A stretch of 64,000 bases of DNA from Bugula neritina. Taxonomy: Eukaryota > Animalia > Bryozoa. Positions 29,325 to 63,750 of this stretch are shown here, piece after piece (positions within the stretch are counted from its first letter, which is position 1; every line of letters begins with the position of its first letter). The stretch is taken from contig OZ037767.1 in NCBI GenBank assembly GCA_964035545.1, forward strand, positions 29,032,628 to 29,096,627. Reading direction: 5' to 3'. Under the pieces are notes generated by a model. That model saw only the letters and a list, made by a program, of their open reading frames with translations, ran no database searches and was not told the origin of the DNA. Made by a program: the position numbers and the translations under genes.

Positions 29325-29994
<670 letters not shown>

Positions 29995-30452: not shown

Positions 30453-33400
30453 CTAAAAGTAATCATCAAATCTAGCCCGCTTTGCGAAGGAATAAGTTGG
30501 GTAGGTTCTTTTGAATTTCTCTGGATGATCAATGAGATAACATCTATGGCATTGTCCACCATGAGGTGTCTCGGTTCTCCAGTTACAACTAGTGCATAGT
30601 TCTCCTGTAGATGGAAACTTCTCAATGCTTCGGGTACCTCCTTTCATGGTGACTTCTGGAATTATCCTCTCTGGCAGACGAGCAGTACGGATGTACGGGC
30701 TATTTCGTTTATAGCTACCTGTTGACATAAAAATTGCCAACACGTTAGTTTTGCTCTCAAGGCATATTCCTGCTATTGCTGATAACATAATTTCATAAGT
30801 GTAATTATTATAATGATTATTTCATAATCATTATAATCTGTTTAGACAGGACATTGCTTCACTCGTGCTGAACAAATTTGAAATACAATAAAATAAAATA
30901 CAAGCTTACTATTTTCTCTCATTTTCTCTCATTTCTACTGTAGATAGAGCTGATTTACTTAGTTACAGTTAATAACTATACATATAAGCTTACTATTTTC
31001 CCTCATAAAGTCAGCATATCTTTCAGAGGAATACTTAACCAGCTCAGTTAAAGTGGCAGCAGGCATTCTTAAGCCTATTCTGCCATACAGAACATTCTTC
31101 AGTCTTGCCATATAGTACACATCTACAAGAGATTAAAAGCAATAGTTTACATCAAATTAAAACAAGGTCATGGTTAATATAGCGCTCAAAACAATAGTTA
31201 CCAGTTGCAGCATATTCCATGTATTCTTCTTTCAGTGGTCGCTTCTTCCAAAGCTGTTTGTCTGAATCAAATGCTTTATGCATCCTTTCTTTGGCAGCAC
31301 CAGAGAAGCCACATCCTGTAAAAAAAGTCAAGAAGTCAAAACTAAACTTCAATGAGTCATTATGAAATATGTATAGTTATCAGCACTTCTTACCAATAGA
31401 AGACAAACACGTCTATGCAAGTGATCACAACAGAGGTAATTATTGACTGCCGAAATTTGCTATAGCAACTGAGTTAATTTAGATCAGGGTATATTTTTTT
31501 AAAACAACAAAAATATGTTTTTATACATACGACACTTCATGTAATGTCATGCTTATTTTTATGAGAAGTAAACTGTTACTACACTATATTCCCACCTTTC
31601 ATGTGGTACTCCATACACTTCTGAAGACCACTGACACATCGCCAATCTTTGCCCTGAAGCTTCATATTTATAGAATTGAGTAGTTGCATGTCCAGCATAC
31701 CTGCAATGTTTGCACACAAGCTTAAAAATTTTGGTATATTTTGATTTTATTTCAAGGCAGAAAATTATAGTTCAATTGTGACAATTAACTTGAATTAAAA
31801 TACTAATCATTGTAAAAACTTAATGATTACAAGCATGTGGTAATGTTTGTTTGCCGACCTAATATTATATTATATTACAGCTTTTTTATAATAAGTAATA
31901 TGTTACAAAATAGTTTCCTACATGATGCAGCATAAGCTTCGTATAGCTATAACACATAATTGTTATAAAAAATATGTAATACATATAATTTATTTCATAG
32001 CATTTCAAATTATTAATTTGAAATGTCAAACAATTAATTTATTTCAAGTGACTGTATAACTGTGAATACAGTTCTTATGATTAGTTTTTGCTTCAAACTA
32101 TAGAAACTGGCTGTGTTCTTATATGGAAGATTACTATATGAAAAACCCGCAACTTGAAAAGAAAAAGAAATCCCCTTGCTATAAATAAAATATATCAGTA
32201 ACAGCAGCTATGCATGTATATAATGGTATATATGCATGTATATAATGGCATATATGCATGTATATAATGGTATATATGCATGTATATAATGGTATATATG
32301 CATGTATATAATGGTATATATGCATGTATATATTGGCATATATGGTTGTTGTTTGTATGGGGTCTTTAGTAGATATTGGCTACATATGTAGCTAATGTAG
32401 CTGCCAAAGTCATATATGCCTAACAATTTTCTACTATCCAATTTTAAGCCACTGCTAATATATTGTTATTTTATGTTGCCATGTTTTGATGGAATACCTG
32501 TGATAGGTTGTTAATGTATATATGTGTTGTAGATGTATATAGGTGTTGTGAATGTATATAGATGTTGTAGATGTATATAGGTGTTGTAGATGTATATAGG
32601 TGTTGTAGATGTATATAGGTGTTGTAGATGTATATAGGTGTTGTAAATGTATATAGGTGTTGTAAATGTACATAGGTGTTGTAGATGTATATAGGTGTTG
32701 TAGATGTATATAGATGTTGTAGATGTATATAGGTGTTGTAAATGTATATATATGTGTTGTAGATGTATATAGGTGTTGTAAATGTATATAGGTGTTGTAA
32801 ATGTACATAGGTGTTGTAGATGTATATAGGTGTTGTAGATGTATATAGATGTTGTAGATGTATATAGGTGTTGTAAATGTATATATAGGTGTTGTAGATG
32901 TATATAGGTGTTGTAAATGTATATAGGTGTTGTAGATGTATATAGGTGTTGTAGGTGTATATAGGTGTTGTAAATGTATATATTTGTTGTAGATGTATAT
33001 AGGTTTTGTAGATGTATATAGGTGTTGTAGATGTATATAGGTGTTGTAAATGTATATAGGTGTTGTAGATGTATATAGGTGTTGTAGATGTATATAGGTG
33101 TTGTAGATGTATATAGGTGTTGTAGGTGTATATAGGTGTTGTAAATGTATATATTTGTTGTAGATGTATATAGGTTTTGTAGATGTATATAGGTGTTGTA
33201 AATGTATATAGATGTTTAGATGCTTATAATTCTGGTAATTTACTGCAGACTTTTGAACAGCATGCGTGATACTGCAAAGTAACCACTTGAAGATAAATTA
33301 AACAGGAAAGAAGTGTAGTAACGGAAAATAAAAAATTGACTGAAAAGGATGTAATGAAAACTTCTAGAGAAATTTTATGATGTGTTATTCAAATATTATG

Positions 33401-34627
33401 TTAAATGATGCATGTTACTTTCGATTTTAAATATAAGCATTCATATGCCAAGATTCTCCCTAGGGCCTAGAATAAGTGTTATCAGGTTAAATGTTGATGC
33501 ATGTGCAGTCTTTCCAGAAAAATTTACTTCTTCCTCTTTAGAATAAACCTCCCCAAGTACCATTTTATAAAAGCATCCACCAGCTATAGATCTGTACAGA
33601 AGTAATCTATTAAAAGCAAGAAGTTACAGTTTCAGTTGAAAGTTACGATGACTTATTACCTTGAACTTTGACCCCATAAAGATGCTGCAGGGCATTACAA
33701 TCTTCACGACAATCATAGAACAGTTTGGTGACTTGGGCATCTTCCAGTATATCTTTCAAACCTGAGAAAACCACAAGATGGACATAATAGGTAGTTTTTA
33801 TGTTCGAAGTCTCTGTTTGTAAGAAACAATGACCATTCTCAATTTTTAAATGTTGCATTGACAGTTCATGTTTTTAAAAATATTGTCCTAAAGAAAACGT
33901 TGCATCACAAGCTCAACACTGTTACATACCAACACATTCACTTCCTTCACATCCAAATTACCAAACAGATAATACAGAAACCGTACCACTGTTTATCTTG
34001 TTAAGACAAAGCTACTGCGTAGCATGTTTTGGGATTTAGGTAAAGCAAAAATATTTTTATCCATTTTTATTTGCTCTAAAAGACTTGTAACTAAGAGTTA
34101 AACTACCAAAATACTTCAGGCAAATATGATAACAAGCACTCTAGCTGCAACCTCGTTTGTCAGTACAAAATGAATTTGCAGCCATTCTGATATTTTCAAA
34201 TGTGACCTCAGGTAGTCTGCTAATGGCTTGGCATGTGGCCTAATTCATACAAGTAAACTATAGCTAAGGTTTGAGAAAGCAACCTGCAAAAACATGCTAT
34301 ATTAAAGTGCTGCAATACATCAGATGTTGATATTGTACAATGATTTTTAGGATGGAATTATATTAATATCAAACTTTGGTTACAAAGCTTACCTTGATCA
34401 AATATTTTCCTCCCCAAGACCACCACATCAAAGAGATACACTTTCTGTGCAGTTGCTACTTGGACCAGACACAACTCTCCAGTCCTCCCCAGCTCCACAC
34501 CTTCACAGTCCACACTCAGCTGAGTTTCTCCTCTCAGGAGTTCTATAACATCTGGTAGCTGATGTTCTTTATCAATTAGTTCCATGGAAATTTTATTACT
34601 ACCCAGTGGCAACTTATGCGAAGCCAT
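30453..34627 (-). CDS. EXD1/Egalitarian-like DEDDy 3'-5' exonuclease with C-terminal C4 motif, copy A1 (catalytic residues intact)
   Basis: Exons ~34393-34627 (SVDCEGVELGRTGELCLVQVAT..VYLFDV), 33660-33761 (LKDILED..KLFYDCREDCNALQH), 31596-31701 (LDMQ), 31202-31316 (LWKKRPLKEEYMEYAAT), 30994-31122 (DVYY), 30453-30718 (LPERIIPEV..CTSC..CHRC). ExoI DxE, ExoII D and ExoIII YxxxD are present. Confidence 0.88.
32208..32335. repeat. 22-bp minisatellite TATGCATGTATATAATGGTATA, ~5.5 copies
   Basis: Direct tandem repetition in intron 2 of copy A1. Confidence 0.9.
32505..33222. repeat. 19-bp minisatellite ATGTATATAGGTGTTGTAG, roughly 35-38 copies
   Basis: Direct tandem repetition in intron 2 of copy A1. 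Confidence 0.95.
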
Positions 34628-35865
34628 AATATATCACTCCTTTATGAGGGTTGATAGAAGCAAACTTTATGGAGAGAATTTTATATGTGAAATGCTTTGG
34701 TTAAGCTTATGTATCAACAGACAGCAATATTGGCATCGGACTTTGCCTTTAGCTTTAGTTATTAAAAATTAGGTATGATATTTTGTTAATATAGTTGGGG
34801 GAGTATCCACTACCACACATATAGCTTTAGTCAAAGTCATGAACAAAGTCTAAATACTTGCAAAAAAAATTCTCAAGAAGGGACTTCTGGTAACAATCAA
34901 TAAAATGCTTACAATTCAGTTAATATTTGCACTATTGTGTATATGCATATTATGTGAAATGATTGTTCACTATACGTAGTCATACAAAGGATCAATAGAT
35001 TGTTAATAGAATTCCCCTTTCCTTGCCCTGATGCTTGCAGTTACAACCTTATAATGTCACCAACTCAGCTATCATTTCCAGTTTTACAATAATTTTAGAT
35101 AGATAGAAACCATATTATTCTAATTAACTTCATTGTTTTGTTTTCCTTTAATTTGGTGCAAATTTCAAGTTTTCCACACACACACACGCACACGCACACG
35201 CACACGCATACAAACGGATAATCGGATATTTGTATATGAGAAATACACTGAACTTTAGAATTGAAAAGTTATTAAGCTTTATTTTCCATATTAAGTTTAT
35301 GCCTTTAGGTTTGCAGATGACAGCCAAATTGATACGAAATACGCTGGTTACATCAAAAGTGGTAATTATGCCTTCATTATATCATACAGATCACATAGAA
35401 TATTATAGCCATAACGTTTTGCATATAAGATTATATAAATTGCAAACTCATAGACTGCTGTAGGTTGAGAATAACATTGCATCTGTGACACTTTTTCTTA
35501 TACAGGACTTCAGCTCTCCAATTGCAAATGGTGCACAACTCTCCTGTGGAGGGAAACTTCTCAATATTCCAAGCTCCTCCTCTCCTAGTGACTTCTGGAA
35601 TTATCCTCTCAGGCAGACGTGCAGATTGGAAATACGGACTACCTTGCTTGTATCCCCCTAAACAAAGCTGACCATATTAACTTTCTCCCTTAGACTTACA
35701 GTGATATAGCAAAACTACGGTGAACAGATTGCATTGTGTATTTTAGCTGTTACAACAAACTTGCGGACAAAACAAAGTGAACAGAAACATTCATGTTTTT
35801 ATAAAAAGTGTAGCAGATTTAAATGTGATACATAGAACTTTAGGATTTTTCAACTCTTTTTACTG

Positions 35866-35948
35866 TAAATTATAAAACCTTCACCCGACTGGGATTCGAA
35901 CCTGAGATCTCAGGCTTGTAATTACACCATGGGGGCTACTGGGTATTC
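35866..35948 (-). mobile_element. tRNA-derived SINE-like head (truncated), intron 5 of B1
   Basis: Minus strand reads CCCAGTAGCCCCCATGGTGTAAT...GGTTCGAATCCCAGTCGGGTGAAGG: partial A box and a canonical B box. Paralogous copies at ~44820-44900 and ~54210-54290; a related element occurs at 63138. Confidence 0.55.
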
Positions 35949-36529
35949 TCAATACTATATAAAGAGAGCCCATTTAAGTAAAAAGGTTTTTGTAACTATC
36001 AGTAATTACTTACTATTTTCTCTCATGAATTCAGCATATCTTTCAGAGGAATACTTAACCAGCTCAGTTAAAGTGGCAGCAGGCATTCGTGACCCTATTC
36101 TTTTATAAAGTGCTTCTTTCAGCTTTGCCAAATAGTACACTTCTAAGGGAAATAATATCAATTGATTTTATTTGATGTTGTATAAGCAAAACATGTAAGG
36201 CTTGGAGCAAGAGAACTATAGTCTCAAGTATAAGTTACCAGTTGCAGCATATGGCATGTATTTTCCTTCAATGATTGCTTCTCCCAAAGTTGCTTGTCAG
36301 AGTTGAATGCTCTGAATAAATTTTCTTTGGCAAGAGTTGAAATACTACATCCTAAAGAATATTACAGATGTTGATTACTCAAATAAAATATAGTTTTCTT
36401 TACTAAGCCAACAGCTAATTGGTTACCATAAACGATCATTGTGGTTGTCTGAAAATAAAAGACTTGGAATTCAAATATTGATAAAAATCGTTTCATTTAT
36501 TCCTAGCATATATGTATATAATAATTGTA

Positions 36530-36589
36530 TGATATTTATTTATATTTATATTTGTATTTATATTTATATTTATATTTATATTTATTTAC

Positions 36590-36666
<77 letters not shown>
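36530..36666. repeat. (ATTTAT)n + (TA)n microsatellite
   Basis: Seen directly; absent at the equivalent site in B2 and B3. Confidence 0.9.
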
Positions 36667-36669
<3 letters not shown>

Positions 36670-38427
36670 ATTGTATAATGTAGTTATTATATATTATATT
36701 ATAATTAATGTGTATAAAGTACGTATAAACTTAGCAAATTTCAAATCATTAGCAACTTACCTTCCATGTGATATTCAATACATCTGTGGAGGCTCTTTGC
36801 CCATTTCCATCTTCCATCTTCTATTTCAAGTTTCATTTGAATAGCATTGAGTATTTGAAGGTCTAAGATACCTGTCAAAGTAGTATATAACATACAATAT
36901 ATAACACATATGTTATACATGTACATCCATAATACATATAATACAACACATGTATAACACATATATGATGCATAAATTATAGACTACATAGTCTGGAAAC
37001 AGAAAAGAGATCATGTTGTGTACTACTATACACACAGAATAGTATAATAGTAGTATCCACCTGAATTTTAATTACCACATGTATAAGGCACAAAATAACA
37101 ACTGACTTACTAAATACAGCTTTATGATTGGCTGGTCGATGGAACCACAAAATGATGTTGCATGGTAAAAACACATGCTCACTTGAATCCAAAGGACTTA
37201 CCTTGAACTTTGACATCATAGCCATGTTGCAGTATGTTGCAATCTTCCCGGCAATCAAAGAAAAGTTTAGTAATTCCAGCGTCTTCTAGCACATCCTTTA
37301 AACCTAAAGTTTGCATGTTCTTATATCGTTAATTTCAAAAATTTGTTAAAAAACTTTTTATAATTACTTTTTTTTGCTTTAGTTGTTGTTATTGAAAAGG
37401 TTGACATAGTTTAGGTTAGTTCGAATATTAGTATTGCCAACTGGATATTATAAAAATCAGTAAAACAATACACGAAACTTTTTCATTTTAGCAATTACAA
37501 GCTGTATCTTACAGACATTTTAATAAAACCAATATCGAAAATTTTGTGATGCCAACACAAATAAATCAACTACCAAAATGGAAAGAGTTTAAATTTCACC
37601 TTGATCGAATATTTTCCTCCCCAAGACTACCACATCAAAGAGATACACCTTCTGTGAAGTTGCTACTTGAACCAGACACAATTCTCCAAATCTCCCCAGT
37701 TCCACACCTTCGCAGTCCACACTTAGCTGAGTTTCTTTTTTCAGAAGTTGTATAACGTCTGATAGTTGATGTTCTTTATCAACCAGTTCAATGGGAATGC
37801 TGTTGCTGTCCACCCTCAACTCAGAGAAACCAGCCAATTGATTCTCTGCCATAATTTAGCTATGATTGGGAAGTTACTTGAGTTACCTTCAGCAATTGTT
37901 AATCTACCAGTTTTTGGTTACAGACGGAGCTTGTGGTTAAAAGAGTTGATGGCTTTCTTTATGGCTGCATATAGCTTTAAATTGGAAAGTTCTGCTTTCA
38001 GATTGAAAGCTATATTCAATGAAAATTCAATTTTAATTAAGAGACAAATCCAAAGGCTGACTGCTTCTAAAAAGAAATTTAATGATAACTTTAGTTAGTC
38101 ATTAGAATAAAAAAGACAAATGTAGGCTATGTTCGTTGATAAAACTTATGATTAGTGTATTACAAAAAGTATCAGCAAGAAATAGTTGTCAGGTTTATGT
38201 TCCTATATGTTAGCAGTTGACCACTAAAATCACAAGATGTACAGGGATTACACAAAGTGTGTTAAACACATCTACACATGCGTTTGTTATATAACGTTTC
38301 AGCTTCGGATGTAATGAAAGACATTAGTCTTTCCAAGCCTTTCTCTCCTCCCCCTCCCCCCTCTCTCTCTTACCATGAATTGAAATAATTTAAGTAAACA
38401 GATATATTATCAGAATCAAGTTACTTA

Positions 38428-38777
38428 CTACTTTCCCGTATGAAGTCAGCATGTCTTTCAGATGAATACCTAGCCAGTTCAGGTAAAATTGCATCAGGTA
38501 TTTGTAAGCTCATTTTTTCATACAGGATATTCTTCATCTGTTCCATATAGCACACATCTATGAGGATAAGATATTAAGGCAGTTTATTAGATATTATAAA
38601 AGTAAAGCATGCAAAGCTTTGACTAGACAGTGGGTAAATGACAACACCAAAATATATATTACCAGTTGCAGCATATTCCATGTATTTTTCTTTCAGTGGT
38701 CGCTTCCTCAAAAGCTCTCTGTCGGAGTTCAATGCTCTGTGTACTCTTTCCTTGGCAGCAATTGAGGGGCCGCATCC
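38428..38777 (-). pseudogene. Orphan exons 4-5 of a C-type EXD1-like gene (fragment C1)
   Basis: GCGPSIAAKERVHRALNSDRELLRKRPLKEKYMEYAAT / DVCYMEQMKNILYEKMSLQIPDAILPELARYSSERHADFIRES, near-identical to 57187-57535. Exons 1-3 are absent (duplication junction at ~38780) and exon 6 is deleted (~38278). Confidence 0.88.
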
Positions 38778-39546: not shown

Positions 39547-42500
39547 CTACTTAGCACGCTTTGAATGGGAAGTAGTTCCGTGTGTTAGTTTAGATCTTTT
39601 TTTTGTAATTTTACCAATGAGGTAACATCTATGACACTGTCCATTTTGACGTGTCGCAGTTCTCAAGTTACAACTGATGCATGGCTCTCCTGTGGATGAA
39701 AACTCATCAAAATTCAAAATACCTCCACGTATAGTAAAGTCTGGAATTATTCTCTCTGGCAGGCGTGCAGTACGGATGTAAGGACTATCTCGTTTATAGC
39801 TACCTGTTGACATAAAAGTTGCCTGAAAGTTATTTTTGTTTTTATGGCAATGCATTCCAGCTACTGCTATTAACATGATTCTGTAAATGTCATTATTTCA
39901 TTATTATAATTTGTTTAGACAGGACATTGCTTCACTCGTGCTGGACAAATTTGAAATACAATAAAACAAATGTATTAGAATTTACATCATATAATTTTAC
40001 CATTTTTTTTCAAAAAGTCAGCGTATCTTTCAGACGAATACTTAACCAGCTCAGTTAAAGTGTCAGAAGGCTTGTTTGAGCAAATTTTTTTATAAAGGGT
40101 ATCTTTCAGCTCCGCCATATAGTGCACATCTACAAGAAATTAAAAACGATAGTTTACATTAAATTAAAACAAAGGCATGGCTAATATAGCGCTCAAAACA
40201 ACAGTTACCAGTTGCAGCATATTCCATGTATTCTTGCTCCAATGGACGCTTTTTCCAAAGCTCTTTGTCTGAATCAAGTGCTTTATGCATCTTTTTTTTG
40301 GCAGCACCGGAGAAGCCACAATCTGTCAAAAAATCAAGAAGCAAATCAAAACTACACTTCAATGAGCTATTATGAAGTGCGTGTGTGTGTGTGTGTGCGT
40401 GTTCACTGCAGAACATACAACTGCTGTATAACAAATACGGAGCCATAACCCCAACTCTAAATGTTGCATGCTATGTATTTTAGAAAAATATTATATTATG
40501 TGCAAACCCAAACTATGCACATTAAATAAAAGATCTGAGTTAACATCAACATGCTGGCATAGCTCTAAATTTTACTTGAACTGGTTTTAATACATGAGCT
40601 TTGTTTTATGATAATGCCCATTTCATTTTTAATACTTTAGCTATATTTTAAATCCATATACATTTTTTACATTCCAATTCTGTTGTTTCACTATTATATA
40701 CATCACCCTGACGAGTGGCAGTAACTTCATGCTCCAAAACAAATTTGTAGGTGATATAATTGATTTTAAAATAAAAGATCTTTGTCAATTACAACCTATA
40801 TACTTATAGTATCTAGCTCAATTTTCCTAGAAAATTTTGAGCACTATTTGATAACTAGTATTACAATATACATTTTACATATTATATATATATATATATA
40901 TAGTTCATAACATTTTCTCCTAGAGGACAAACCTGTTCATATTTAAGTGATCACAATAGAGTTAATAACTGACTGCTGAAATTTGCTAACGACTGAGTTA
41001 TTTTAGACCGTAGTTTTTGTATAGCAACTTAATATTATGTTTTTGTACACATGACACTTTGTGTAACATTATGTTTATTTTCATAAGTATTAAGCCGTTA
41101 CTACATAATGTTCCCACCTCTCATGTGTTCCTCCATACACGTCTGAAGCCTGCTGACAGACTGCCCATCCCCACCCTGATGCTTCATATTAATACAATCG
41201 AGTAGTTGAATGTCCAGCATACCTGCAATGTTGACATACAAGCATTGTTTGCCTACAAATAATGTGGACTGTAAAAGCAGTTAGGATAGTTTTATTGTGA
41301 CTATTTGTTTGAATTAAAATATTAACCATAGTGACAACTTAGTAACTACAAGCATGTGGTAATGTTTGTTGGTCGACCTAATATTATATTACAGCTTTTT
41401 TATAATATGTATTATGTTATACAACAATTTCCTACATGATGTAACACAGGTACACTTTAAGTTCCATATAGCTATAGTAATACATAGTTGTTATAAACAA
41501 TATGTAATGCAGGTGGCTACTTGCACAAAATACTTTATCATTTAATTGCAATATCAAGCAGAAATCAATTTATTATAAGTGACTATATATAACTGTGAGT
41601 ACAGTGATTAAAATCAGCATGTGTTTGCTGTTGCTTCCAACTACAAAGACTTATAGCTGTGTTCTTGTATAAAAACTGAAATATGAACCCTCTCTCAACA
41701 GTTTGAAAAAGAGGAATTATATGTCTGTAAAAAATGTTAATAACAGCAGCTATATGCATGTATATAATATGGTTATTGTTTGTATGGTATTTTTAGTAAC
41801 TATTAATTAGCAAGATGCTAAGGTGATATAATAGGCCTATTAATTTTTTCATTGTCGCACATTTCTAAAACACTAGTACTAAAATATTGTTTTATGTTGC
41901 CAAGTTTTGATGGCATATTGCTGATATGTTGTAAATGCTTATAGGTGTTGTAGATATTTATAGTTTTGATAATTTACTGCAGATTCTTGAAAAAAAACTT
42001 GTGTGATACTGAAAAGCAGTAACTTGAAGTGAAATTAAGTAGGAAACGAAAAATACAAAAGTATGTAAAACTGACTAAAGATCATAAAATATGACAATTT
42101 TCAGAGAGATTTAAAAATGTGTTACTTCCCTATTATGTCAGATGATGTACGATATACTTACTAATTTCAATTCTAAATACATGAAATTAGGTGTCAGGGT
42201 TTTCCATAGAACAAATGTTATTTGATTAAATGAATTTATACAAGAATTCACTAACTGTAGATGTGTACAGAAGTAATCTATTAACCAATCAAGAAGTTAT
42301 AGTTTCAATAGAAAGTTATAATGACTTTTTACCTTGAACTTTGACCCCATATTGATGCTGCAAGGCATTGCAATCTTCACGACAATCATAAAACAGTTTG
42401 GTGATTTTTGCATCTTCCAGTATATCTTTCAAACCTGAATCAATCATTAAATGGACGTATTATATAGTTTTTATGTTCAAAGCCTTTATTGATGAGAAAC

Positions 42501-43396
42501 TAGGACCGTTCTCAATTTTTAAATGTTTGAACTGCCAGTTCATGTTTCTAAAAATAATGTTCGGAAGAAAATGTTATATAAAAAGCTCATAAGTATCTCA
42601 ACACTGTTACACACTGATGCATTCTCTTCCTATAACACATCTAAATGAGCAAACCTTTGACATGTGATACAGAAATGTTGCATGCCGCTGTTTATCTTGT
42701 AAAAAAGGTAGCATTTTTTAAAATTCAGGTAATGAAAAATTGTTTTTATCTATTTCTATTTGCTCTAAAAGACTTGTAACTAAGAGTAAAACTACCAAAA
42801 CACTTCAGGTAAATATGATAACAGACACTCTAGCTGCAACCTCAATGGTCAGTACAGAATGAGTTTCTATTTGCAGCCATATACATTCAAATGTGACCTC
42901 AGGTAGTCTGCTAATGGCTTGGCATGTGCCATAACTCATACAAGTAAACTATAGCTAAGGTTTGAGAAAGCAACCTGCAAAAACATGCTATAATATGAGA
43001 TGACTTAGCTTGGCATTAAAGTGCTGCAATGCATCAGATGTTGATATTGTACAATGATTTTTAGAATGGAATTATATTAGCATCAAACTTATAGTAAGAT
43101 TCCTGCTTACCTGCATCGAATATTTTCTTCCCCAAGACCACCACATCAAAGAGATACACTTTCTGTTTAGTTGCTACTTGGACCAGACACAACTCTCCAG
43201 TCCTCCCCAGCTCCACACTTTCACAGTCCACACTTAGCTGAGTTTCTTCTCTCAGAAGTTCTATAACTTCTGGTAGCTGATCTTCCTGGTCAATCAGTTC
43301 CATGGGAATGCTAGCAGCTGGTAGCTGATCTTCTTGATTAATCGGGTCAGTGGAAATATTTCTACTTTTTGACCTTAAATTATATGGAGGATCCAT
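39547..43396 (-). CDS. EXD1/Egalitarian-like DEDDy exonuclease with C4 motif, copy A2
   Basis: Exons ~43111-43396 (SVDCESVELGRTG), 42333-42434, 41118-41222, 40209-40323, 40001-40129, 39547-39803 (CISC..CHRC). Frame is open through all six exons and YAAT|D is intact. Confidence 0.87.
40403..40880 (+). mobile_element. Internally deleted Penelope-like element (short RT stub fused to GIY-YIG C-terminus and 3' tail), antisense in intron 3 of A2
   Basis: 40441-40580 translates SHNPNSKCCMLCILEKYYIMCKPKLCTLNKRSELTSTCWHSSKFLL, matching the recalled PLE ORF end (CxLCLxEKxxI..LNKRSELxSxCRHxxKFLL). It is followed by a hammerhead-like motif, flanked by (GT)n and (TA)n, and absent from A1. Confidence 0.8.
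40702..40755 (+). ncRNA. Minimal type I hammerhead ribozyme motif of the Penelope-like element, core mutated (GAAA->AAAA)
   Basis: ATCACC-CTGACGA-GTGGCA(gtaacttca)TGCTCC-AAAA-CAAATTTGT-A-GGTGAT: perfect 6-bp stem I, CUGANGA box, stem II with one mismatch, palindromic stem III ACAAATTTGT, GUA cleavage triplet. Confidence 0.7.
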
Positions 43397-44383: not shown

Positions 44384-46647
44384 TTATATAAATTGCAAAC
44401 TCTTAGACTGCTGTAGATAGAGAATAACATTGCATCTATGACACGTTTTCTTATACAGGACTTCAGCTCTCCAATTGCAAATGGTGCACAACACTCCTGT
44501 GGAGGGAAACTTCTCAATATTCCAAGTTCCTCCCCTCCTAGTGACTTCTGGAATTATCCTCTCAGGCAGACGTGCAGATTGGAAGTATGGACTACCTTGC
44601 TTGTATTCCCCTAAACAAAGCTGAGAATATTAACTTCCTCCTTTAGACTGACAGTGATATAGCAAAACTACGGTGAACAGATTGCACTGTGTATTTTAGC
44701 TGTTATAACAAACTTGCGGACAAAACAAAGTGGACAGAAACATTCATGTTTTTATAAAAAGTGTAGCAGATTTAAATGTGATACATAGAACTTTAGGATT
44801 GTTCAACTCTTTTTACTGTAAATTATAAAACCTTCACCCGACTGGGATTTGAACCTGAGATCTCAGGCTTGTAATTACACCACAGGGGCTACTGGGCATT
44901 CTCAATACTATATAGATAGAGCCCATTTAAGTAAAAAGGCTTTTGTAACTATCAGTAATTACTTACTATTTTCTCTCATGAATTCAGCATATCTTTCAGA
45001 GGAATACTTAACCAGCTCAGTTAAAGTGGCAGCAAGCATTCGTGATCCTATTCTTTTATAAAGAGCATCTTTCAGCTTTGCCAAATAGTACACTTCTAAA
45101 GGAAATAATAGCAATTGATTGTATTTGATGTTGTATAAGCAAAACATGTAAGGCTTGGAGCAAGAGAACTATAGTCTCAAGTATAAGTTACCAGTTGCAG
45201 CATACGGCATGTACTTTTCCTTCAATGATTGCTTCTCCCAAAGTTCCTTGTCAGAGTTGAATGCTCTGAATAAATTTTCTTTGGCAAGAGTTGAAATACT
45301 ACATCCTAAAGAATATTACAGATGTTGATTACTCAAATAAAATATAGTTTTCTTTACTAAGCCAACAGCTAATTGGTTACCATAAACAATCATTGTGGTT
45401 GTCTGAAAATAAAATACTTTGAATTCAAAATATTGATAGAAATCATTTCATTTATTCCTAACATATATATAATAATTGTATAATATAGCTATTATATATC
45501 ATATTATAATTATTGTGTATAAAATATAAACTTATATAACAAATTTTTAGTCCTTAGCAACTCACCTTCCATGTGATATTCAATACATCTGTGGAGGCTC
45601 TTTGCCCATTTCCATCTTCCATCTTCTATTTCAAGTTTCATTTGAATAGCATTGAGTATTTGAAGGTCTAAGATACCTGTCAAAGTAGTATATAACATAC
45701 AATATATAATACATATGTTATACATATACATCCATAATACAACACATGTAGAATACATATATGATGCATATATTATAGACTGCACAGTCTGGAAACAGAA
45801 AAGAAGTCATGTTATGTAGTACTATACACACAGAGTAGTATAATAGTAGTATCCACCTGAATTTTAATTAACACATATATAAGGTACAAAATACTAACTG
45901 ACCTACTAAAAACAGCTTTATGATTGGCTGGTTGATGGAACCACAACATGATGTTGCATGGTAAAAACACATGCTCACTTGAACCCAAAGAACTTACCTT
46001 GAACTTTGACATCATAGCCATGTTGCAGTATGTTGCAATCTTCTCGGCAATCAAAGAAAAGTTTAGTAATTCCAGCATCTTCTAGCACATCCTTTAAACC
46101 TAAAGTTTGCATATTTTTATATCGTTAATTTCAAAAATGTGTTAAAACATTTTTTATAATTACTTTTTTTGCTTTAGTTGCCGTTATTGAAAAAGTTGAC
46201 CTAGTTTAGGTTAGTTCGAATATTAGTATTGCTAACTGGATATTATAAAAATCAGTAAAACAATACACGAAACTTTTTCATTTTAGCAATAACAAGCTGT
46301 ATCTTACAGACATTTTAATAAAACCAATATCGAAAATTTAGTGATGCCAACACAAATAAATTAACTACCAAAATGGAAAGAGTTTACGTTTCACCTTGAT
46401 CGAATATTTTCCTCCCCAAGACTACCACATCAAAGAGATACACTTTCTGTTTAGTTGCTACTTGAACCAGACACAACTCTCCAAATCTCCCCAGCTCCAC
46501 ACCTTCACAGTCCACACTTAGCTGAGTTTCTTCTCCCAGAAGTTGTATAACATCTGGTAGCTGATGTTCTTGGTCAATCAGCTCCATGGGAATGCTTTCA
46601 CTGTCCACCCTCAACTCAGAGAAACCAGCCAATTGGTCCTCTGCCAT
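44384..46647 (-). CDS. EXD1-like exonuclease with C4 motif, copy B2 (ExoIII Asp->Glu)
   Basis: Exons ~46395-46647, 45998-46099, 45566-45676, 45192-45306, 44966-45094, 44384-44610 (CTIC..CHRC). Open frame; the exon 4/5 junction G|AA gives YAATE. Confidence 0.86.
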
Positions 46648-49629: not shown

Positions 49630-49709
<80 letters not shown>

Positions 49710-52700
49710 ACTGACTGCTGAAATTTGCTAACGACTGAGTTATTTTAGAGCGTAGTTTTTGTATAGCAACTTAACATTATGTTTTTTTACACATGACACT
49801 TTGTGTAACATTACGTTTATTTTCATAAGTATTAAGCCGTTACTACATAATGTTCCCACCTCTCATGTGTTCCTCCATACACATCTGAAGCCTGCTGACA
49901 GACTGCCCATCCCCACCCTGATGCTTCATATTAATACAATCGAGTAGTTGAATGTCCAGCATACCTGCAATGTTGACATACAAGCATTGTTTGCCTACAA
50001 ATAATGTGGACTGTAAAAGCAGTTAGGATAGTTTTATTGTGACTATTTGAATTAAAATACCAACCATAGTGACAACTTAGTAACTACAAGCATGTGGTAA
50101 TGTTTGTTGGTCGACCTGATATTATATTACAGTGTTTTATAATATGTATTATGTTATACAACAGTTTCCTACATGATGTAACACAGGTACACTTTAAGTT
50201 CCATATAGCTATAGTAATACATAGTTGTTATAAACAATATGTAATGCAGGTGGCTACTTGCACAAAAGACTTTATTATTTAATTGCAATATCAAGCAAAA
50301 ATCAATTTATTATAAGTGACTATATATAACTGTGAGTACAGTTATTAAAATCAGCATGTGTTTGCTGTTGCTTCCAACTACAAAGACTTATAGCTGTGTT
50401 TTTGTATACAAACTGAAGTATGAACCCTCTCTCAACAGTTTGAAAAAGAGGAATTATATGTCTGTAAAAAATGTTAATAACAGCAGCTATGCATGTATAT
50501 AAAAATATGGTTATTGTTTGTATGGTATTTTTATTAACTATTAATTAGCAAGATGCTAAGGTGATATAATAGGCCTATTGATTTTTTCATTGTCACACAT
50601 TTCTAAAACACTAGTTCTAAAATATTGTTTTATGTTACCAAGTTTTGATGGCATGTTGCTGATATGTTGCAAATGTTTATAGGTGTTGTAGATATTTGTA
50701 GTTTTGATAATTTACTGCAGATTCTTAAAAAACTTGTGTGATACTGAAAAGCAGTAACTTGAAGTAAAATTAAGTAGAAAACGAAAAATATGAAAGTATG
50801 TAAAACTGACTAAAGATAATAGAATATGACAATTTTCAGAGAGATTTAAAAATGTGTTACTTCCCTATTATGTCAGATGATGCATGTACGATATACTTAC
50901 TAATTTCAATTCTAAATACATGCAATTAGGTCCCTAGAACATGCAGTGTGATTAGGTTAAATGAATTTATACAAGAATTTACCAACTGTAGATGTGTACA
51001 AAAGTATTCTATTAACCAATCAAGAAGGTATAGTTTCAGTTAAAAGTTACTGTTACTGGCCCCGTATGAATTAAACCAGGATTTCCAAACGCAGAAGTTT
51101 ATTGGTTATACTTGTTGGTAAACTTGCTGGTAAAAACTAAATAAGAAAGGCAAAAGTTATATAAATGATTGCATGCATATAAATGTGGTTAAAATATTAA
51201 AGTAATGCTCACAAAAACCATAAAGTAAATTTATTATAAAATAATAATTCAGATAATAATATGAATAAAAGTAACTAACCTCTTGGGTCCTTCATAAACA
51301 GTGCCAGTAAATAATATATTGTCAAACCAGTAGAAGAATAAAATAATAAGTACAGTTTTGTTAAAGAGTGCTGCCAACTGATTGTATTAAGTTTGTAAAG
51401 TGTTTATATACTCTGGTTGTTGTTACTGTACCAGGCAAAAACATATTGCATAAACGACTATTGTCCCTAAAAATTACCACAATGATTGTGTCCCAAAACA
51501 TAGTAAACATTCACTAGGTAGCCTCAGGGTACCAACCTAGCCCGTACAGGTAGGGCAAGAATGACAGCCACCCCAACCACAATGACCTGACCACAAATCT
51601 AATAGTCAGCACAAGGCAGATGAGTAATGCCTGCTGACGTATGTCACCTAAACATAAATAGGAAGTTAATGGGGTCAATAGTTATTTATAGTGGGCAACA
51701 CACAACCAGTTACAGTTACGATGACTTATTACCTTGAACTTTGACCCCATAAAGATGCTGCAGGGCATTACAATCTTCACGACAATCATAGAACAGTTTG
51801 GTGACTGTCCCATCTTCCAGTATATCTCTCAAACCTGAATCAATCATCAAATAGACATATTATATAGTTTTTATGTTCACAGCCTTTATTGATAAGAAAC
51901 TATGACCGTTCTCAATTTTTAAATGTTTGAACTGCCAGTTCATGTTTCTAAAAATAATGTTCGGAAAAAAATATTATATAAAAAGCTCATAAGTATCTCA
52001 ACACTGTTACACACTGATGCATTCTCTTCCTATAACACATCTAAATGAGCAAACCTTTGACGTATGATACAGAAATGTTGCATGCTACTGTTTCTCTTGT
52101 AAAAGGTAGCATCTTTTAAAATTCAGGTAATGAAAAATTGTTTTTATTTATTTCTATTTGCTCTAAAAGACTTGTAACTAAGAGTAAAACTACCAAAATA
52201 CTTCAGGTAAATATGATAACAGACACTCTAGCTGCAACCTCAATGGTCAGTACAGAATGAGTCTCTATTTGCAGCCATTCTGATATTTTCAAATGTGACC
52301 TCAGGTAGTCTGCTAATGGTTTGGCATGTGGCATAATTCATACAAGTAAACTATAGCTAAGGTTTGAGAAAGCAACCTGCAAAAACACACTATATGAGAT
52401 CACTTAGCTTAGCATTAAAGTGCTGCAATACATCAGATGTTGAAATTGTGCAATGATTTTTAGATTGGAATTATGTTAGCATCAAACTTATAGTAAGATT
52501 CCTGCTTACCTGCATCAAATATTTTCCTCCCCAAGACCACCACATCAAAGAGATACACTTTCTGTGAAGTTGCTACTTGGACCAGACACAACTCTCCAGT
52601 CCTCCCCAGCTCCACACCTTCACAGTCCACACTTAGCTGAGTTTCTTTTTTCAGGACTTGTATAACAACTGGTAGCTGATATTCCTGGTCAATCAGTTCC

Positions 52701-52795
52701 ATGGGAATGCTAGCAGCTGGTAGCTGATCTTCTTGATTAATCGGGTCAGTGGAAATATTTCTACTTTTTGACCTTAAATTATATGGAAGATCCAT
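48317..52795 (-). CDS. EXD1/Egalitarian-like DEDDy exonuclease with C4 motif, copy A3
   Basis: Exons ~52510-52795, 51733-51834, 49860-49964, 48978-49092, 48771-48899, 48317-48573. Open frame; DCE, DCRED and YAATD are intact. Confidence 0.87.
49147..49237. repeat. (GTGTGC)n hexanucleotide microsatellite
   Basis: Seen directly; A2 has a short (GT)n at the same site. Confidence 0.95.
49240..49446 (+). mobile_element. Penelope-like element reverse transcriptase fragment, antisense in intron 3 of A3
   Basis: Translates CITNTERNMIFHARKMLIYQSGQPWSKKGSSLFGITMGSYDGAECCTLVGIF, matching the recalled PLE RT segment IIxHARKSLLF..PWxKK..FDVTMGSYDGAExCELVG. Confidence 0.8.
49447..49830. repeat. Long inverted duplication (arms ~49447-49572 and ~49705-49830) around a loop containing (TA)~36
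   Basis: The left arm ACTTATGAAAATAAAC...CAGCAGTCAGTTATTA is the reverse complement of the right arm TAATAACTGACTGCTG...GTTTATTTTCATAAGT, with only a few mismatches. A2 has a single direct copy. Confidence 0.92.
51051..51714 (-). mobile_element. Solo LTR of an LTR retrotransposon (BEL/Pao-like by TSD length), intron 2 of A3
   Basis: 664 bp, termini TGTTACTGG...CCAGTTACA, 5-bp TSD GTTAC (51046-51050 and 51715-51719). Empty site AAAGTTACGATGAC in A1. Minus-strand TATATAAA (~51404-51411) and AATAAA (~51098-51103). Confidence 0.85.
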
Positions 52796-53766: not shown

Positions 53767-56041
53767 TTATATAAATTGCAAACTCATAGACTGCTGTAGA
53801 TTGAGAATAACGTTGCATCTGTGACACTTTTTCTTATACAGGACTTCAGCTTTCCAGTTGCAAATGGTGCACAACTCTCCTGTGGGTGGAAACTTCTCAA
53901 TATTCCAAGCTCCTCCCCTCCTAGTGACTTCTGGAATTATCCTCTCAGGCAGACGTGCAGATTGGAAGTATGGACTACCTTGCTTGTATCCTCCTAAACA
54001 AAGCTGACAATATTAACTTTTACCCTTAGACTTACAGTGATATAGCAAAACTACGATAAAAAAATTGCATTGTGTATTTTAGCTGTTACAACAAACTTGC
54101 GGACAAAAATAAAGTGGACAGAACCATGCGTGTCTTTATAAAAAGTTTTACAGCTTTAAATGTGATACGTAGAACTTTAAGATTTTTGAACTCTTTCTCT
54201 TTTTATTGTAAATTATAAAATCTTCACACAACTGGGATTCAAACCTGAGACCTCAGACGTGCAATTACACCACAGGGGCTACTGGGTATTCTCAATACTA
54301 TATAAATAGAGCCCATTTAAGTAAAAAGGTTTTTGTAACTATCAGTAATTACTTACTATTTTCTCTCATGAAGTCAGCATATCTTTCAGAGGAATACTTA
54401 ACCAGCTCAGTTAAAGTGGCAGCAGGCATTCGGGAGCCTATTCTTTTATAAAGAGCATCTTTCAGCTTTGCCAGATAGTACACTTCTAAAGGAAATAATA
54501 TTAATTGATTTTATTTGATGTTGTATAAGCAAAACATGTGAGGCTTGGAGCAAGAGAACTATAGTCTCAAGTATAAGTTACCAGTTGCAGCATATGGCAT
54601 GTATTTTTCCTTCAATGATTGCTTCTCCCAAAGCTCTTTGTCAGAGTTGAAAGCTCTGAACAAATTTTCTTTGGCAAGAGTTGAAATACTACATCCTAAA
54701 GAATATTACAGATGTTGATTACTCAAATAAAATATAGTTTTCTTTACTAAGCCAGCAGCTAATTGGTTACCATAAACAATCATTGTGGTTGTCTGAAAAT
54801 AAAAGACTTTGAATTTAAAATATTGATGGAAATCATTTCATTTATTCCCAGCATTCATATAATAATTGTATAATATAGCTATTATATATTATATTATAAT
54901 TAATGTGTATAAAATATAAACTTAGCAAAGTTCTAATCATTAGCAAGTAACCTTTTATGTGATATTCAATACATCTGTGGAGGCTCTTTGCCCATTTCCA
55001 TCTTCCATCTTCTATTTCAAGTTTCATTTGAATAGCATTAAGTATTTGAAGGTCTAAGATACCTGTCAAAGTAGTAGGCTATATAACATACAATATATAA
55101 TACTTATATGATACATGTACATCCATAATACATATAATACAACACATGTATAACACATATATGATGCATATATTATAGACTACACAGTCTGGAAACAGAA
55201 AAGAAGTCATGTTATGTAGTAATATACACATAGTAGTATAATAGTAGTATCCACCTGAATTTTAATTAGCACATATATGAGGTACAAAATACTAACTGAC
55301 ATACTAAAAACATCTTTTTGATTGGCTGGTTGATGAAACCACAAAATGATATTGCATGGTAAAAACACATGCTCACTTGAACCCAAAGGACTTACCTTGA
55401 ACTTTGACATCATAGCCATGTTGCAGTATGTTGCAATCTTCTCGGCAATCAAAGAAAAGTTTAGTAATTCCAGCATCTTCTAGCACATCCTTTAAACCTA
55501 AAGTTTGCATGTTCTTACATCGTTAATTTCAATAGTTTGTTAAAACACTTTTTATAATCACTTTTTTTGTTTTAGCTGTTGTTATTGAAAAGGTTGACAT
55601 AGTTTAGGTTAGTTCGAATATTAGTATTGCCAACTGGATATTATAAAAATCAGTAAAACAATACACAAAACTTTTTCATTTTAGCAATTACAAGCTGTAT
55701 CTTACAGACATTTTAATAAAACCAATATAGAGAATTTAGTGATGCCAACACAAATAAATTACCAAAGTGGAAAGAATTTAAATGTCACCTTGATCGAATA
55801 TTTCCCTTCCCAAAACCACCACATCAAAAAGATACACTTTCTGTGTAGTTGCTACTTGAACCAGACACAATTCTCCAAATCTCCCCAAATCTACACCTTC
55901 ACAGTCCACACTTAGCTGAGTTTCTCCTCTCAGAAGTTGTATAACATCTGGTAGCTGATGTTCCTGATCAATCAGTTCCATGGGAATGCTTTCGCTGTCC
56001 ACCCTCAACTCAGAGAAACCAGCCAATTGGTCCTCTGCCAT
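53767..56041 (-). CDS. EXD1-like exonuclease with C4 motif, copy B3 (ExoIII Asp->Glu)
   Basis: Exons ~55789-56041, 55396-55497, 54952-55062, 54582-54696, 54356-54484, 53767-53993. Open frame; YMPYAATE. Confidence 0.86.
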
Positions 56042-56521: not shown

Positions 56522-58884
<2,363 letters not shown>

Positions 58885-60563: not shown

Positions 60564-63500
60564 CTAAGATGCCTTGTTTACGGACCGATTTGTTTTGGTC
60601 ACCTCTGGATGATCAATGAGGTAACATCTGTGACACTGTCCACCATGAGGTGTCTCAGTTCTCCAGTTACAACTGATGCATGGCTCTCCTGTGGATGGAA
60701 ACTTCTCAATATTCCAGATACCTCTTCTATTGGTAACTTCTGGAATTATCCTCTCTGGTAGACGGGCATTACAAATGTATGGATTACCCTTCTTGTATCG
60801 ACCTAAACAGAACTGATAGTATTAACCACGATACTTTGTCAGAATATCTCTAGGTTTACTATAGTATAGCAAATTTAAAAATAAAAAAATGGTATTACTT
60901 AAGTGTTTAGTAGCTTTTACAAAAATTTGTGGCCAAAACATCTTATATTTTTATAAGCTGCCTGTTTCAGCGTTTAATGTAGTGAATGTGATGAAAGATT
61001 TCCTAGTAGCCCCTATAGTGTAAAGGTTAGTAAGTTAGAAGTCTGCATTCATTTCATAAGCTATTTCGGCCTGTAAAGTGTGTTGCAGTGTAGTGTATTG
61101 TAGTGTAGTGTATTGTAGTGTAGTGTATTGTAGTGTAATGTATTGTAGTGTATTGTAGTGTAGTGTATTGTAGTGTAGTGTATTGTAGTGTAATGTATTG
61201 TAGTGTAGTGTATTGTAGTGTAGTGTATTGTAGTGTAATGTATTGTAGTGTATTGTATTGTAGTGTAGTGTAGTATAGTATAGGTTAGGTTAGTGTAGTG
61301 GAAGGCTATATTCTTTCTTAAATATTTCCTTTTACTGTAGATCGAGCTGATTTACTTAGTTACAGTTTATAACTATAATACATATAATCTTACTATTTTC
61401 CCTCATGAAGTCAGCATATCTTTCAGAGGAATATTTAACCAGCTCAGTTAAAGTGGCAGCAGGCATTCGTGACCCTATTCTTTTATAAAGAGCATCTTTC
61501 AGCTTTGCCAGATAGTACACATCTACAAGAGATTAAAAACAATAGTCAATAATAAAATTAAAACTCAAAGGGCACTGCAAAAAACTGGCTTTATGTATAA
61601 AAGAAGAGAGCTAATGAGCAGAATATAGATTACCAGTTGCAGCGTACAGCATGTATTCTTCTTTCAATGGTCGTTTCTTCCAAAGCTCTTTGTCTGAATC
61701 AAATGCTTTGTGCATGAATTCCTTAGCATCAGTACCGGAAAAGCCACAACCTAAATTATACCAGGTAAAACCTATTTAGTTGGATATTGTACTAACATAA
61801 GCTACACTACACTAAACTATACTAAAATAAACTACTGCTACTCTAAATTAAGTTAATGTTGCTCCAGATAATGCACTACTCCACTACAACATCAATTAAA
61901 CTATAGTAGGCTACACTATATTGCACTACACTGTACTTCACCAAACTGCACTACACTGCACTACGCAACACTAAATTTGATTCCAAGATATTTCTTATTT
62001 ACCTTTCATGTGATAGTCCATGCATTTTTGAAGGCCACTGACAAATTGGCATCGTTTACCTAAGAGCTTCAGTTGAAAAATGTCAAGCATTTGAATATCT
62101 AAAATCCCTGCAACAGCAGAAATATTGAATTCAACAATTGGTAAAATACATGGGAAACATTTATCACTCTTCCTACAATAGCATGAGACTGCAAAGATTG
62201 TTGCAAAACAATTTGTACGCTACCTTAAGTCTACTTTATGTATAACATTTCACTACTAAATTGATAAGCATTTTTATATAGTTTCCATGTATGATTCTAA
62301 ATATATATTGTGAAATAAGTATATGCATGTTAGATATTATCTTTTAATTTAATATCATAAATAACAACCGTAGAAAAGAAATAATAAAATTTAACATAAT
62401 GGTTAGTAGCACAGAATTGAGATAGCTTGCTTCACAGACAGAAAATCTTTGTTTAAACATAGTCCACACAGAGCAGTTACACTGTACAGCTGAGTAAGCC
62501 CATCAAATGTTCTACATTTTTAGAACTTTCATACCATATTCACTTTCAAAATTCTTTAGCTAAAACTTGTAGCATTTCTTACGATATGGAGGCTCAGGAA
62601 TCTAATAACCTTTAGCTAGATCTACACATAATTCAACATTTCCTATAAATTAATATTGCAGTGTGATATTACTGCTTATTGTAGCGGCTTTTTTTCATGT
62701 AAATTCTTTATCTTGGTTAGCTTACATATTTTTAATCATGAAACATGGGTGCATAAATATATAACTATATATATACATTAATGTACTGAAATGCTATAGA
62801 TATTTCCTTTGCAATAACGTATTTATCAGTTACTGATATGTAGACGCCCTAACTAACTGGTAACTTATGAGATATTGAAATACTCAAGTATCAATAACAA
62901 GTAGTTCTAGTTGACATGACCCTTCCTTTACCTTGAACTTTGACATCATATTGATGCTGCAGCATGTTGCAATCTTCTCGACAATCAAAGAAAAGTTTAG
63001 TTATTCTAGCATCTTCCAGCACATTTCTAAAGCCTAAAACCACCACACCATCATGATAACAATTTCTTGTCTTGTATTAATGTATTATGTTACAATCATA
63101 TATTTTGTTCTCAGCAGTTATTTGTGTAGTGTTGGGATTACCCAGTAGTCCCTGCGGTGTAATGGTAGAGCGCCTAACTCGAATCTCAGAGTGGGCAAAA
63201 GTCTTATAATTTATAAATCGAAGATAGCATAATGTCAAAAATATATTCTTATATTCTAAAAATTGAAAGCTGCAAACATACCAAATACAAGATATTTACT
63301 GTGAATGCGAGATTTTTCTGGTTATTCACTTCATTATAAAATTTAATATACATTCCGTTATACTTTGAAAAAGTGACTACAAGATGGAATCTGGCTGAGC
63401 GTTTACGAACAACCCGGACTTAAGAATTTCAGGATACAAAGCTGCAAGTCTTATAATATAGTATTGATACATCCAGAACTTTGGTAACAAAGCTTACCTT

Positions 63501-63750
63501 GATCGAATATCTTTCTCCCCAAGACCACCACATCAAAGAGATACACCTTCTGTGTAGTTGCTACTTGAACCAGACACAACTCTCCAAATCTCCCCAGCTC
63601 CACACCTTCACAGTCCACACTCAGCTGAGTTTCTTCTCTCAGGAGTTGTATAACATCTGGTAGCTGATGTTCCTGGTCAATCAGTTCTATGGGAATGCTA
63701 CTGCTGCTTGACTGTAGCATAGATAACACAGCTGAACTTTTGGCAGCCAT
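60564..63750 (-). CDS. EXD1/Egalitarian-like DEDDy exonuclease with C4 motif, copy D (catalytic residues intact)
   Basis: Exons ~63498-63750, 62933-63033, 62003-62107, 61634-61750, 61395-61522, 60564-60802 (LPERIIPEV..CISCNWRTETPHGGQCHRC). Open frame. Confidence 0.88.
61085..61300. repeat. (GTAGT/GTATT)n pentanucleotide microsatellite
   Basis: Seen directly in intron 5 of copy D. Confidence 0.93.
63138..63218 (+). mobile_element. tRNA-derived SINE-like head (degenerate), intron 1 of copy D
   Basis: TACCCAGTAGTCCCTGCGGTGTAATGGTAGAGCGCC..CTCGAATCTCAG..TTATAATTTATA. It shares its start and tail with the 35866-35948 element but sits at a non-paralogous site and in the opposite orientation. Confidence 0.5.

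Follow-up and report, generated by a model that had tools for sequence, protein, structure and literature searches.

A recently amplified tandem array of DEDDy nuclease genes with a four-cysteine tail in the bryozoan Bugula neritina

A stretch of 64,000 nucleotides from the bryozoan Bugula neritina (OZ037767.1:29032628-29096627, here called the window; the assembly spans 216 Mb in 321 contigs) contains the greater part of a tandem gene array in which each complete copy joins a nuclease domain of the DEDDy type to a tail with four cysteines. Counting the copies found past the right edge of the window, we read the array as 11 paralogues of an old subfamily that has been amplified recently, and we believe, with moderate confidence, that they encode zinc-finger-assisted, metal-dependent 3'-5' exoribonucleases. 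The nuclease domain, encoded by exons 1-5, would be combined with a compact C4 zinc finger, encoded by exon 6 and predicted to pack on the nuclease, and the proteins would act as metal-dependent 3'-5' exonucleases on the 3' ends of single-stranded RNA. By analogy with the CCHC fingers of Trypanosoma RNase D, the tail could hold the strand upstream of the scissile end. The array itself probably grew by unequal crossing-over of multi-gene units, with copies being lost at the same time. We favor an exoribonuclease because the catalytic residues are conserved in four phyla, because the nearest relatives and the alternative partner domains of this nuclease core handle RNA, and because the fingers of the trypanosome enzyme hold RNA 5-9 nt from its 3' end.

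The array was mapped by tblastn of the exon peptides of one copy (copy A) against the window, with E-values of 1e-8 to 1e-75. On the minus strand of positions 30453-63750, eight ordered six-exon sets (A-H) lie head-to-tail together with two fragments, and they fall into the copy types alpha, beta, gamma and delta. The features are given below in window positions; a slash in a motif marks the exon 4/5 junction.

30453..34627, minus strand: copy A (alpha), 316 amino acids, intact; DEDDy residues present as VDCEG, FYDCRED and YAAT/D; exons 1-6 at 34627-34393, 33761-33660, 31700-31596, 31315-31202, 31122-30994 and 30718-30453
35431..37852, minus strand: copy B (beta), six exons; a 1-nt deletion in an A-run of exon 4 (from 36351) causes a frameshift
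38429..38776, minus strand: fragment 1 (gamma), exon 4 (38776-38663) and exon 5 (38557-38429) only
39547..43396, minus strand: copy C (alpha), 330 amino acids, open frame; ExoI motif VDCES, with D and E retained
44384..46647, minus strand: copy D (beta), 311 amino acids, open frame; ExoIII motif YAAT/E (Asp to Glu), and WEKQSL for WKKRPL
47447..47599, minus strand: fragment 2 (gamma), a degenerate exon 4 only
48317..52795, minus strand: copy E (alpha), 330 amino acids, open frame, DEDDy residues intact
53767..56041, minus strand: copy F (beta), 311 amino acids, open frame; ExoIII motif YAAT/E
56522..58884, minus strand: copy G (gamma), 307 amino acids, open frame; ExoI motif VDCAG (catalytic Glu to Ala); short end after CHRC
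60564..63750, minus strand: copy H (delta), 314 amino acids, open frame, DEDDy residues intact; first of four delta copies
2552 bases beyond the window: exon 6 of copy I, 266 nt

The gene models are uniform. AG/GT boundaries flank every exon, all introns are GT-AG and in phase 1 across the copies, and the protein models run from 307 to 330 amino acids; the exons of copy A sum to 951 nt, in frame, for 316 amino acids. The initial annotation had counted eight complete paralogues and two fragments, and the exon sets are indeed all there in the tblastn search, but one of the eight has a broken reading frame: alignment with exon 4 of copy D reveals the single-nucleotide deletion in copy B; this copy is probably a young pseudogene, unless the deletion is a homopolymer sequencing error. 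Both fragments are of the gamma type, fragment 1 being 93% identical at the nucleotide level to the corresponding part of copy G and fragment 2 being 86% identical to that copy. The window as a whole is AT-rich, with a G+C content of 30-39%. Two of the introns hold repeats of their own: a (GA)n microsatellite of about 300 bp (56831-57136) makes up part of intron 5 of copy G, and an intron of copy E contains a palindromic inverted repeat of about 390 bp (49444-49833, 78% self-complementary) that may be an insert resembling a miniature inverted-repeat transposable element.

It had also been guessed that the array continues past the right edge of the window, and this proved correct. In the next 40 kb, which we also examined, copies I, J and K follow, along with an extra, duplicated exon 6 and a pseudo-exon 5; the array ends 19,963 bases beyond the window. 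In total, 11 copies bearing exon 1 occupy 53.5 kb, and neither exon 1 nor exon 6 has a match elsewhere in the 216-Mb genome. Copies A, C and E are of the alpha type, B, D and F of the beta type, G and both fragments of the gamma type, and H-K of the delta type. Copy I has lost exon 2, the ExoII exon, which the orthologous copy in another B. neritina assembly retains; in copy J the frame shifts beyond the zinc finger, which leaves a shorter end. The reading frame is open in nine copies (A, C, D, E, F, G, H, J and K).

Homology searches were carried out with single exons of the window, and full-length folding and Foldseek searches used a protein of the bryozoan Watersipora, P0005, as a proxy. 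The nuclease and tail motifs that had been picked out by eye are all present in the exons. Those of the nuclease are VDCEG...GELCLVQVAT...YLFD in exon 1, F(F/Y)DCREDC in exon 2, and W.KRPL...YAAT/D across the exon 4/5 junction, with intron 4 splitting the codon of the ExoIII Asp. The Pfam family PF01612 (DNA_pol_A_exo1; cut-off 23.6 bits) is passed by exon 1 of copy A (27.0 bits), exon 2 of copy A (26 bits) and exon 1 of copy C (30.5 bits), as it is by full-length P0005 (72.8 bits). All five DEDDy residues are retained in six of the nine open-frame copies (A, C, E, H, J and K). Across 55 family members from four phyla, D29, E31, D84 and Y171 are invariant and D175 is at least 90% conserved.

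Among solved structures, a profile of the family finds Egalitarian (Egl; 1e-32), EXD1 (2e-30) and RNase D of Trypanosoma brucei (TbRND; 8.5e-28), and more weakly Rrp6 (about 5e-13), the exonuclease domain of a MUT-7 homologue of the Nibbler type (2e-11), WRN (1e-9) and EXD2 (4e-6). Exon 1 alone has its best match in Egalitarian, at 3e-4. Foldseek ranked EXD1 first for the P0005 model, followed by TbRND, Egl and Rrp6. In sequence and fold the domain is thus closer to Egl, EXD1 and TbRND than to Rrp6, WRN or polymerase proofreading domains, and the reading of these exons as an EXD1/Egalitarian-like DEDDy domain stands. Yang et al. are said to have described, in 2016, an N-terminal Lsm domain in EXD1, and the array genes leave no room for one, as had been noticed from the sequence at the outset. 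The nuclease begins after only 13-35 residues, the ATG of copy A is closely preceded by an in-frame stop, and some of the genes are only about 0.5-0.8 kb apart (about 480 bp from the stop of G to the ATG of F, and about 800 bp from the stop of B to the ATG of A), with no further coding exon in those gaps. Pfam searches of the array exons and P0005 gave no match to WHD_Egal or zf-CCHC.

The second half of the architecture is the tail encoded by exon 6, with the motif SPY..ARLPERIIPEV..IEKFPSTGE.CxxC-x11-CHRC. Its four cysteines are invariant in the array and in alignments of 50-55 family members that include the exon 6 sequences of the window, and the exon 6 copies match positions 223-305 of the family profile (best E-value 1e-6). 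An AlphaFold2 model of P0005, built with 55 family sequences, is confident (predicted local distance difference test score, pLDDT, 94.9; predicted template-modeling score, pTM, 0.92) and places the tail in an ordered position against the nuclease. In this model a beta-hairpin in the tail is followed by one CxxC knuckle and then by the second CxxC, where a C-terminal helix begins, a layout that resembles a treble clef. The tail had not been recognized in known relatives when the array was first described; it is missing from the solved structures of EXD1, Egl and EXD2 and from every exonuclease-domain structure of a Nibbler/MUT-7 homologue.

Searches with the tail alone gave little. It has no Pfam match, and a sequence search of the PDB returned only lin-28, at an E-value of about 1. 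A tail-only model (exon 6 of copy A with 49 relatives, pLDDT 72) found nothing above noise with Foldseek and VIA-align, the weak hits being LIM domains and ribosomal zinc-ribbon proteins, and the ESM Atlas returned only zinc domains of isoleucyl-tRNA synthetase at a template-modeling (TM) score of about 0.5. A profile of the tail (LP..IIPE...F...CxxC...CxxC) does give a borderline match to a zinc module of DP2, the large subunit of archaeal PolD (PDB 6hms_B, residues 1098-1142; E-value 3.3e-4 for the chain and 0.023 for the domain), a likeness that may be due to chance. Copies A (30453-30520), I and K end in an acidic-aromatic sequence (RARFDDYF, RARFDDGF and RARFDDDYFDF, respectively), and many cnidarian members end alike (..SFWW, ..GDW, ..YLW); copies C/E, B/D/F, G and H have lost this end, and in J it lies out of frame. 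It may be a docking peptide.

TbRND is the only solved case in which this nuclease core is followed by a linker and zinc fingers (PDB 7c42-7c4c). This enzyme is active as a 3'-5' exoribonuclease, and its fingers bind the RNA upstream of the 3' end, at nucleotides R5-R9 (PMC7797062). In Foldseek it was also the only structure to align through the tail region of the P0005 model, loosely and over up to 294 columns. The likeness has limits: TbRND has four extended CCHC zinc knuckles (CX2CX4HX4C), whereas the array proteins have a single C4 finger (CxxC-x11-CHRC) that follows a conserved LPERIIPEV strand, and no sequence homology is detectable between the TbRND fingers and the array tails. The ESM Atlas matched the P0005 model to a 305-residue Basidiomycota cluster at a TM score of 0.87 over residues 1-284. 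In other lineages, Atlas clusters join the same nuclease core to cold-shock (CSD), KH, CCHC or WHD_Egal domains, and these partner modules bind RNA.

Several points weigh against the exoribonuclease reading. Three open-frame copies have substitutions in the active site, with Glu replaced by Ala in the ExoI motif of G and Asp by Glu in the ExoIII motif of D and F; beyond these, copy B is frameshifted ahead of ExoIII and copy I is without its ExoII exon. WRN and EXD2 are DEDDy enzymes that work on DNA, so the substrate could be DNA. The tail alone has no significant relative in sequence or structure, and its proposed role in RNA binding is argued from analogy. Finally, Egalitarian retains all five DEDDy residues yet functions without them (10.1101/2025.08.03.668247), and because Egl keeps these residues without needing them, their conservation in the array does not prove catalysis.

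The last of these points leads to a different proposal, that the array proteins are non-catalytic RNA-binding adaptors in the manner of Egalitarian and EXD1, with the fold and the finger serving only to bind RNA or a partner protein. Both of the nearest solved relatives function without catalysis; the substitutions in G, D and F are tolerated in frames that are open and under purifying selection; and the acidic-aromatic end of many members resembles a docking peptide. Set against this, the five catalytic residues are invariant or nearly so in the 55 members from four phyla, whereas EXD1 of silkworm (VSGDG) and shark (AVEG) has lost the ExoI Asp that the array keeps in VDCEG. We regard purely adaptor-like proteins as improbable.

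The same comparison bears on how the array proteins relate to EXD1, whose nuclease-like domain is stated to be inactive (10.1101/2025.08.03.668247). EXD1 (PDB 5fiq/5fis), a piRNA biogenesis factor that works with TDRD12, and the array proteins share an Egl-like nuclease fold. EXD1 has the Lsm domain and a dead active site, features that define it and that are absent from the array proteins; the array has the C4 tail and the catalytic residues. Drosophila Egalitarian (PDB 9uju, 9rvy) shares the DEDDy residues and the W..RPL...YAA.D motif with the array. It differs in being a protein of about 1000 amino acids with an N-terminus that binds BicD, an RNA-binding winged-helix/EHD region and a dynein light-chain motif, in having no C4 tail and in being encoded by a single-copy gene, compared with proteins of 307-330 amino acids that have 13-35 residues before the nuclease. 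Nibbler/MUT-7/EXD3 and Rrp6/RNase D share the DEDDy fold and act on RNA 3' ends, which they trim or degrade. They are more distant (E-values of about 1e-11 to 1e-13), have HRDC, PMC2NT or N-terminal Nbr domains, and are all without a C4 tail.

In a tree of 75 sequences, all 26 tail-bearing rows fall in one group of 38 rows (86% by the Shimodaira-Hasegawa approximate likelihood-ratio test, SH-aLRT), the branches that separate the groups not being strongly supported. The bryozoan proteins form a 100% clade, and a canonical EXD1, that of the shark Scyliorhinus, is placed in the opposite half. The Bugula genome has a second, single-copy Egl/EXD1-like gene (C1:24175300-24177130, plus strand) in which ExoI (AFTG) and ExoIII (LAKTV) are degenerate and ExoII is kept. 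The exon-1 region of shark EXD1 matches the array at 2e-11, compared with 2.5e-7 for this C1 locus. The C1 gene could be the canonical, inactive orthologue of EXD1 or Egl. The subfamily in the array, for its part, appears to be a sister form to EXD1/Egl in which the active site was retained and a zinc finger was added.

The genes in the array are not peculiar to Bugula. A search of 1.84 billion cluster representatives with an exon-1 profile gave two near-identical fragments of open reading frames (ORFs) and then, after a gap, full-length proteins. Altogether, 73 cluster representatives of about 290-400 amino acids have the nuclease followed by Y..NA.LP..IIP...FP...CxxC...CxxC. Tail-bearing members include proteins of the nemertean Lineus longissimus, the sea star Patiria miniata, the hydrozoans Clytia and Hydractinia, the coral Desmophyllum and Watersipora, most of them carrying an 'EXD1-like' name at NCBI; Hydractinia, Clytia and Patiria are experimentally tractable. 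The cluster look-ups name hypothetical proteins of B. neritina ('EXD1', EB796_001258), and four to five proteins of Watersipora subatra have been deposited as 'piRNA biogenesis protein EXD1-like', a label that is probably misleading for these genes. In the literature searched, no paper links EXD1 with bryozoans or with the cnidarians named here.

Watersipora has at least five such genes in about 125 kb of OY755166.1, with the same six exons and with a DUF716 gene adjoining. Two coral-like metagenome contigs (ERZ25067548 and ERZ25073805) carry three and four intronless copies, respectively, in 5-10 kb and in mixed orientation. Because these contigs and Watersipora are clustered too, tandem clustering is a habit of the family that extends beyond Bugula. 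The contrast between the intronless coral-type genes and the five phase-1 introns of the bryozoan genes indicates intron gain or loss within the family. The suggestion that this is a lineage-specific family is thus not borne out, the same architecture and tandem clusters being found in other phyla. Judged from these comparisons, genes of this type are ancient, occur widely and have already been deposited; all that is recent is their local amplification in Bugula.

That amplification can be followed in some detail. The array contains three repeats of a unit of about 9 kb that is made up of an alpha copy, a beta copy and a gamma piece. With introns and spacers counted in, the nucleotide identity between the B/C and D/E units is 90-94%, and that of the F/E unit to either of them is 88-94%; for copy A, the identity to C and E drops to about 77%. 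A contig from another B. neritina assembly (VXIV02000141.1, 56 kb, GCA_010799875.2) aligns with the right end of the array at 84-94% identity and has the same gene order: an RRM (hnRNP-Q-like) gene, four delta copies, gamma, beta and alpha. Its single beta-alpha segment is about 86-87% identical to the D-C and F-E units. Because these two units are about 92% alike mutually, compared with about 86-87% to their B. neritina counterpart, the triplication of the 9-kb unit most likely postdates the split from the lineage of GCA_010799875.2, with the caveat that its contig ends at this point. In the same alignment, a stretch of about 4.4 kb located 24,564-28,991 bases beyond the window end (29121191-29125618) has no counterpart in VXIV02000141.1, although both of its sides align; its absence from the orthologous B. 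neritina site fits a recent insertion.

Selection on the copies was estimated from pairwise Nei-Gojobori counts, made per exon and then summed, for 20 pairs of 256-325 codons. The ratio of nonsynonymous to synonymous divergence (dN/dS) is 0.16-0.48 in all 20 pairs. For the young pairs, dS is 0.08 (C/E) and 0.15 (D/F), in agreement with intron divergence, and copy E is, by this measure, a recent duplicate of C. Because dN/dS lies between 0.16 and 0.48 and dS matches the divergence of the introns, we conclude that the copies evolved as coding genes under moderate constraint; the values indicate gene-wide selection that is purifying rather than diversifying. The variable positions cluster in roughly the first 25 residues, in the exon-3 loop between ExoII and ExoIII, in the 11-residue loop between the cysteine pairs and in the sequence after CHRC. 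Exon 1 has a lower synonymous divergence than the other exons and its trees give species-specific clades; the exon 6 tree, in contrast, joins Watersipora P0005 with Bugula C/E. The contrast suggests an old paralogy that has been partly erased by gene conversion, although these sequences are short. Birth-and-death evolution, which was proposed when the array was first described, describes these data well, with birth seen in units that are 92% identical and death in a frameshift, an exon deletion and the fragments.

These results also bear on whether the copies are working host genes at all, as opposed to an assembly artefact, the cargo of a transposon or a set of decaying pseudogenes. Two copies are broken and there are several fragments, as would be expected of decay, but nine open frames with dN/dS below 0.5 are unlike it. 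Introns are retained, and the Watersipora cluster is syntenic, lying beside a DUF716 gene. We consider it very improbable that the array is anything other than a set of working host genes. An assembly artefact was rejected, since the copies differ from each other at 8-30% of nucleotides and the independent assembly GCA_010799875.2 shows the same order of types and the same flanking genes. Transposon cargo was rejected as well: no transposase or reverse-transcriptase ORF occurs in or between the copies, and the neighbors of the coral-like clusters have no Pfam domain.

Rapid turnover is likewise the starting point for the idea that the array is a diversifying family of nucleic-acid defence or small-RNA (piRNA/siRNA) effectors, driven by conflict with viruses or transposons. 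The recent triplication, the frameshift, the exon deletion and the fragments would all be in keeping with this, as would the recurrence of tandem clusters in Watersipora and on the coral-like contigs, and the placing of the variable positions at the two ends of the protein, in the exon-3 loop and in the loop that separates the cysteine pairs. The nearest characterized relatives, EXD1 and Nibbler, work in small-RNA pathways. Moreover, coral-type tails weakly match the Stc1 domain (PF12898), an adaptor that connects RNA interference (RNAi) to chromatin: 16 of the 55 members do so at an E-value of 0.1 or less, with a best value of 1.1e-4. However, two of these matches score 17.4 and 17.6 bits, below the Pfam cut-off of 24.8, and P0005, the one bryozoan member listed individually, has no Stc1 match. 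PADLOC gave no meaningful match, gene-wide dN/dS is well below one, at the values given above, for every pair, and tandem amplification also arises for dosage. We think a defence family unlikely.

The surroundings of the array are partly conserved. Two tandem DUF716/TMEM45-like genes flank it on the minus strand (15982-16206 and 24671-25204; Pfam PF04819, 1e-9 to 1e-11), and with a DUF716 gene beside the Watersipora cluster as well, the neighborhood is conserved even though the orientation differs. A (CA)n/(TG)n microsatellite of about 700 bp (29292-30045) lies immediately downstream of copy A and separates the array from the DUF716 genes. Elsewhere in the window there is an N-terminal exon of TRAPPC10 (10718-10948). 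Minisatellite-like arrays at 2600-3900 and 18280-18790 give long stop-free ORFs with repeats of the YTILYY type on both strands, which are almost certainly non-coding.

EXD1 and Egalitarian are textbook examples of nuclease folds that were turned into RNA-binding adaptors. The subfamily described here has been kept in cnidarians, echinoderms, nemerteans and bryozoans and has been amplified in tandem repeatedly. In the Bugula array, birth-and-death evolution can be seen cleanly and can be dated by comparison with a sister assembly. More speculatively, and in our view with low probability, the genes that join a nuclease to a C4 finger could represent the active ancestral form of EXD1/Egl, acting in non-vertebrate marine animals as fast-turnover trimmers or degraders of RNA 3' ends in the control of transposons or viruses, with the variable finger loop and the docking peptide giving each paralogue its own target or partner. 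It may be that the subfamily is a missing enzyme of RNA 3'-end processing or silencing in marine invertebrates.

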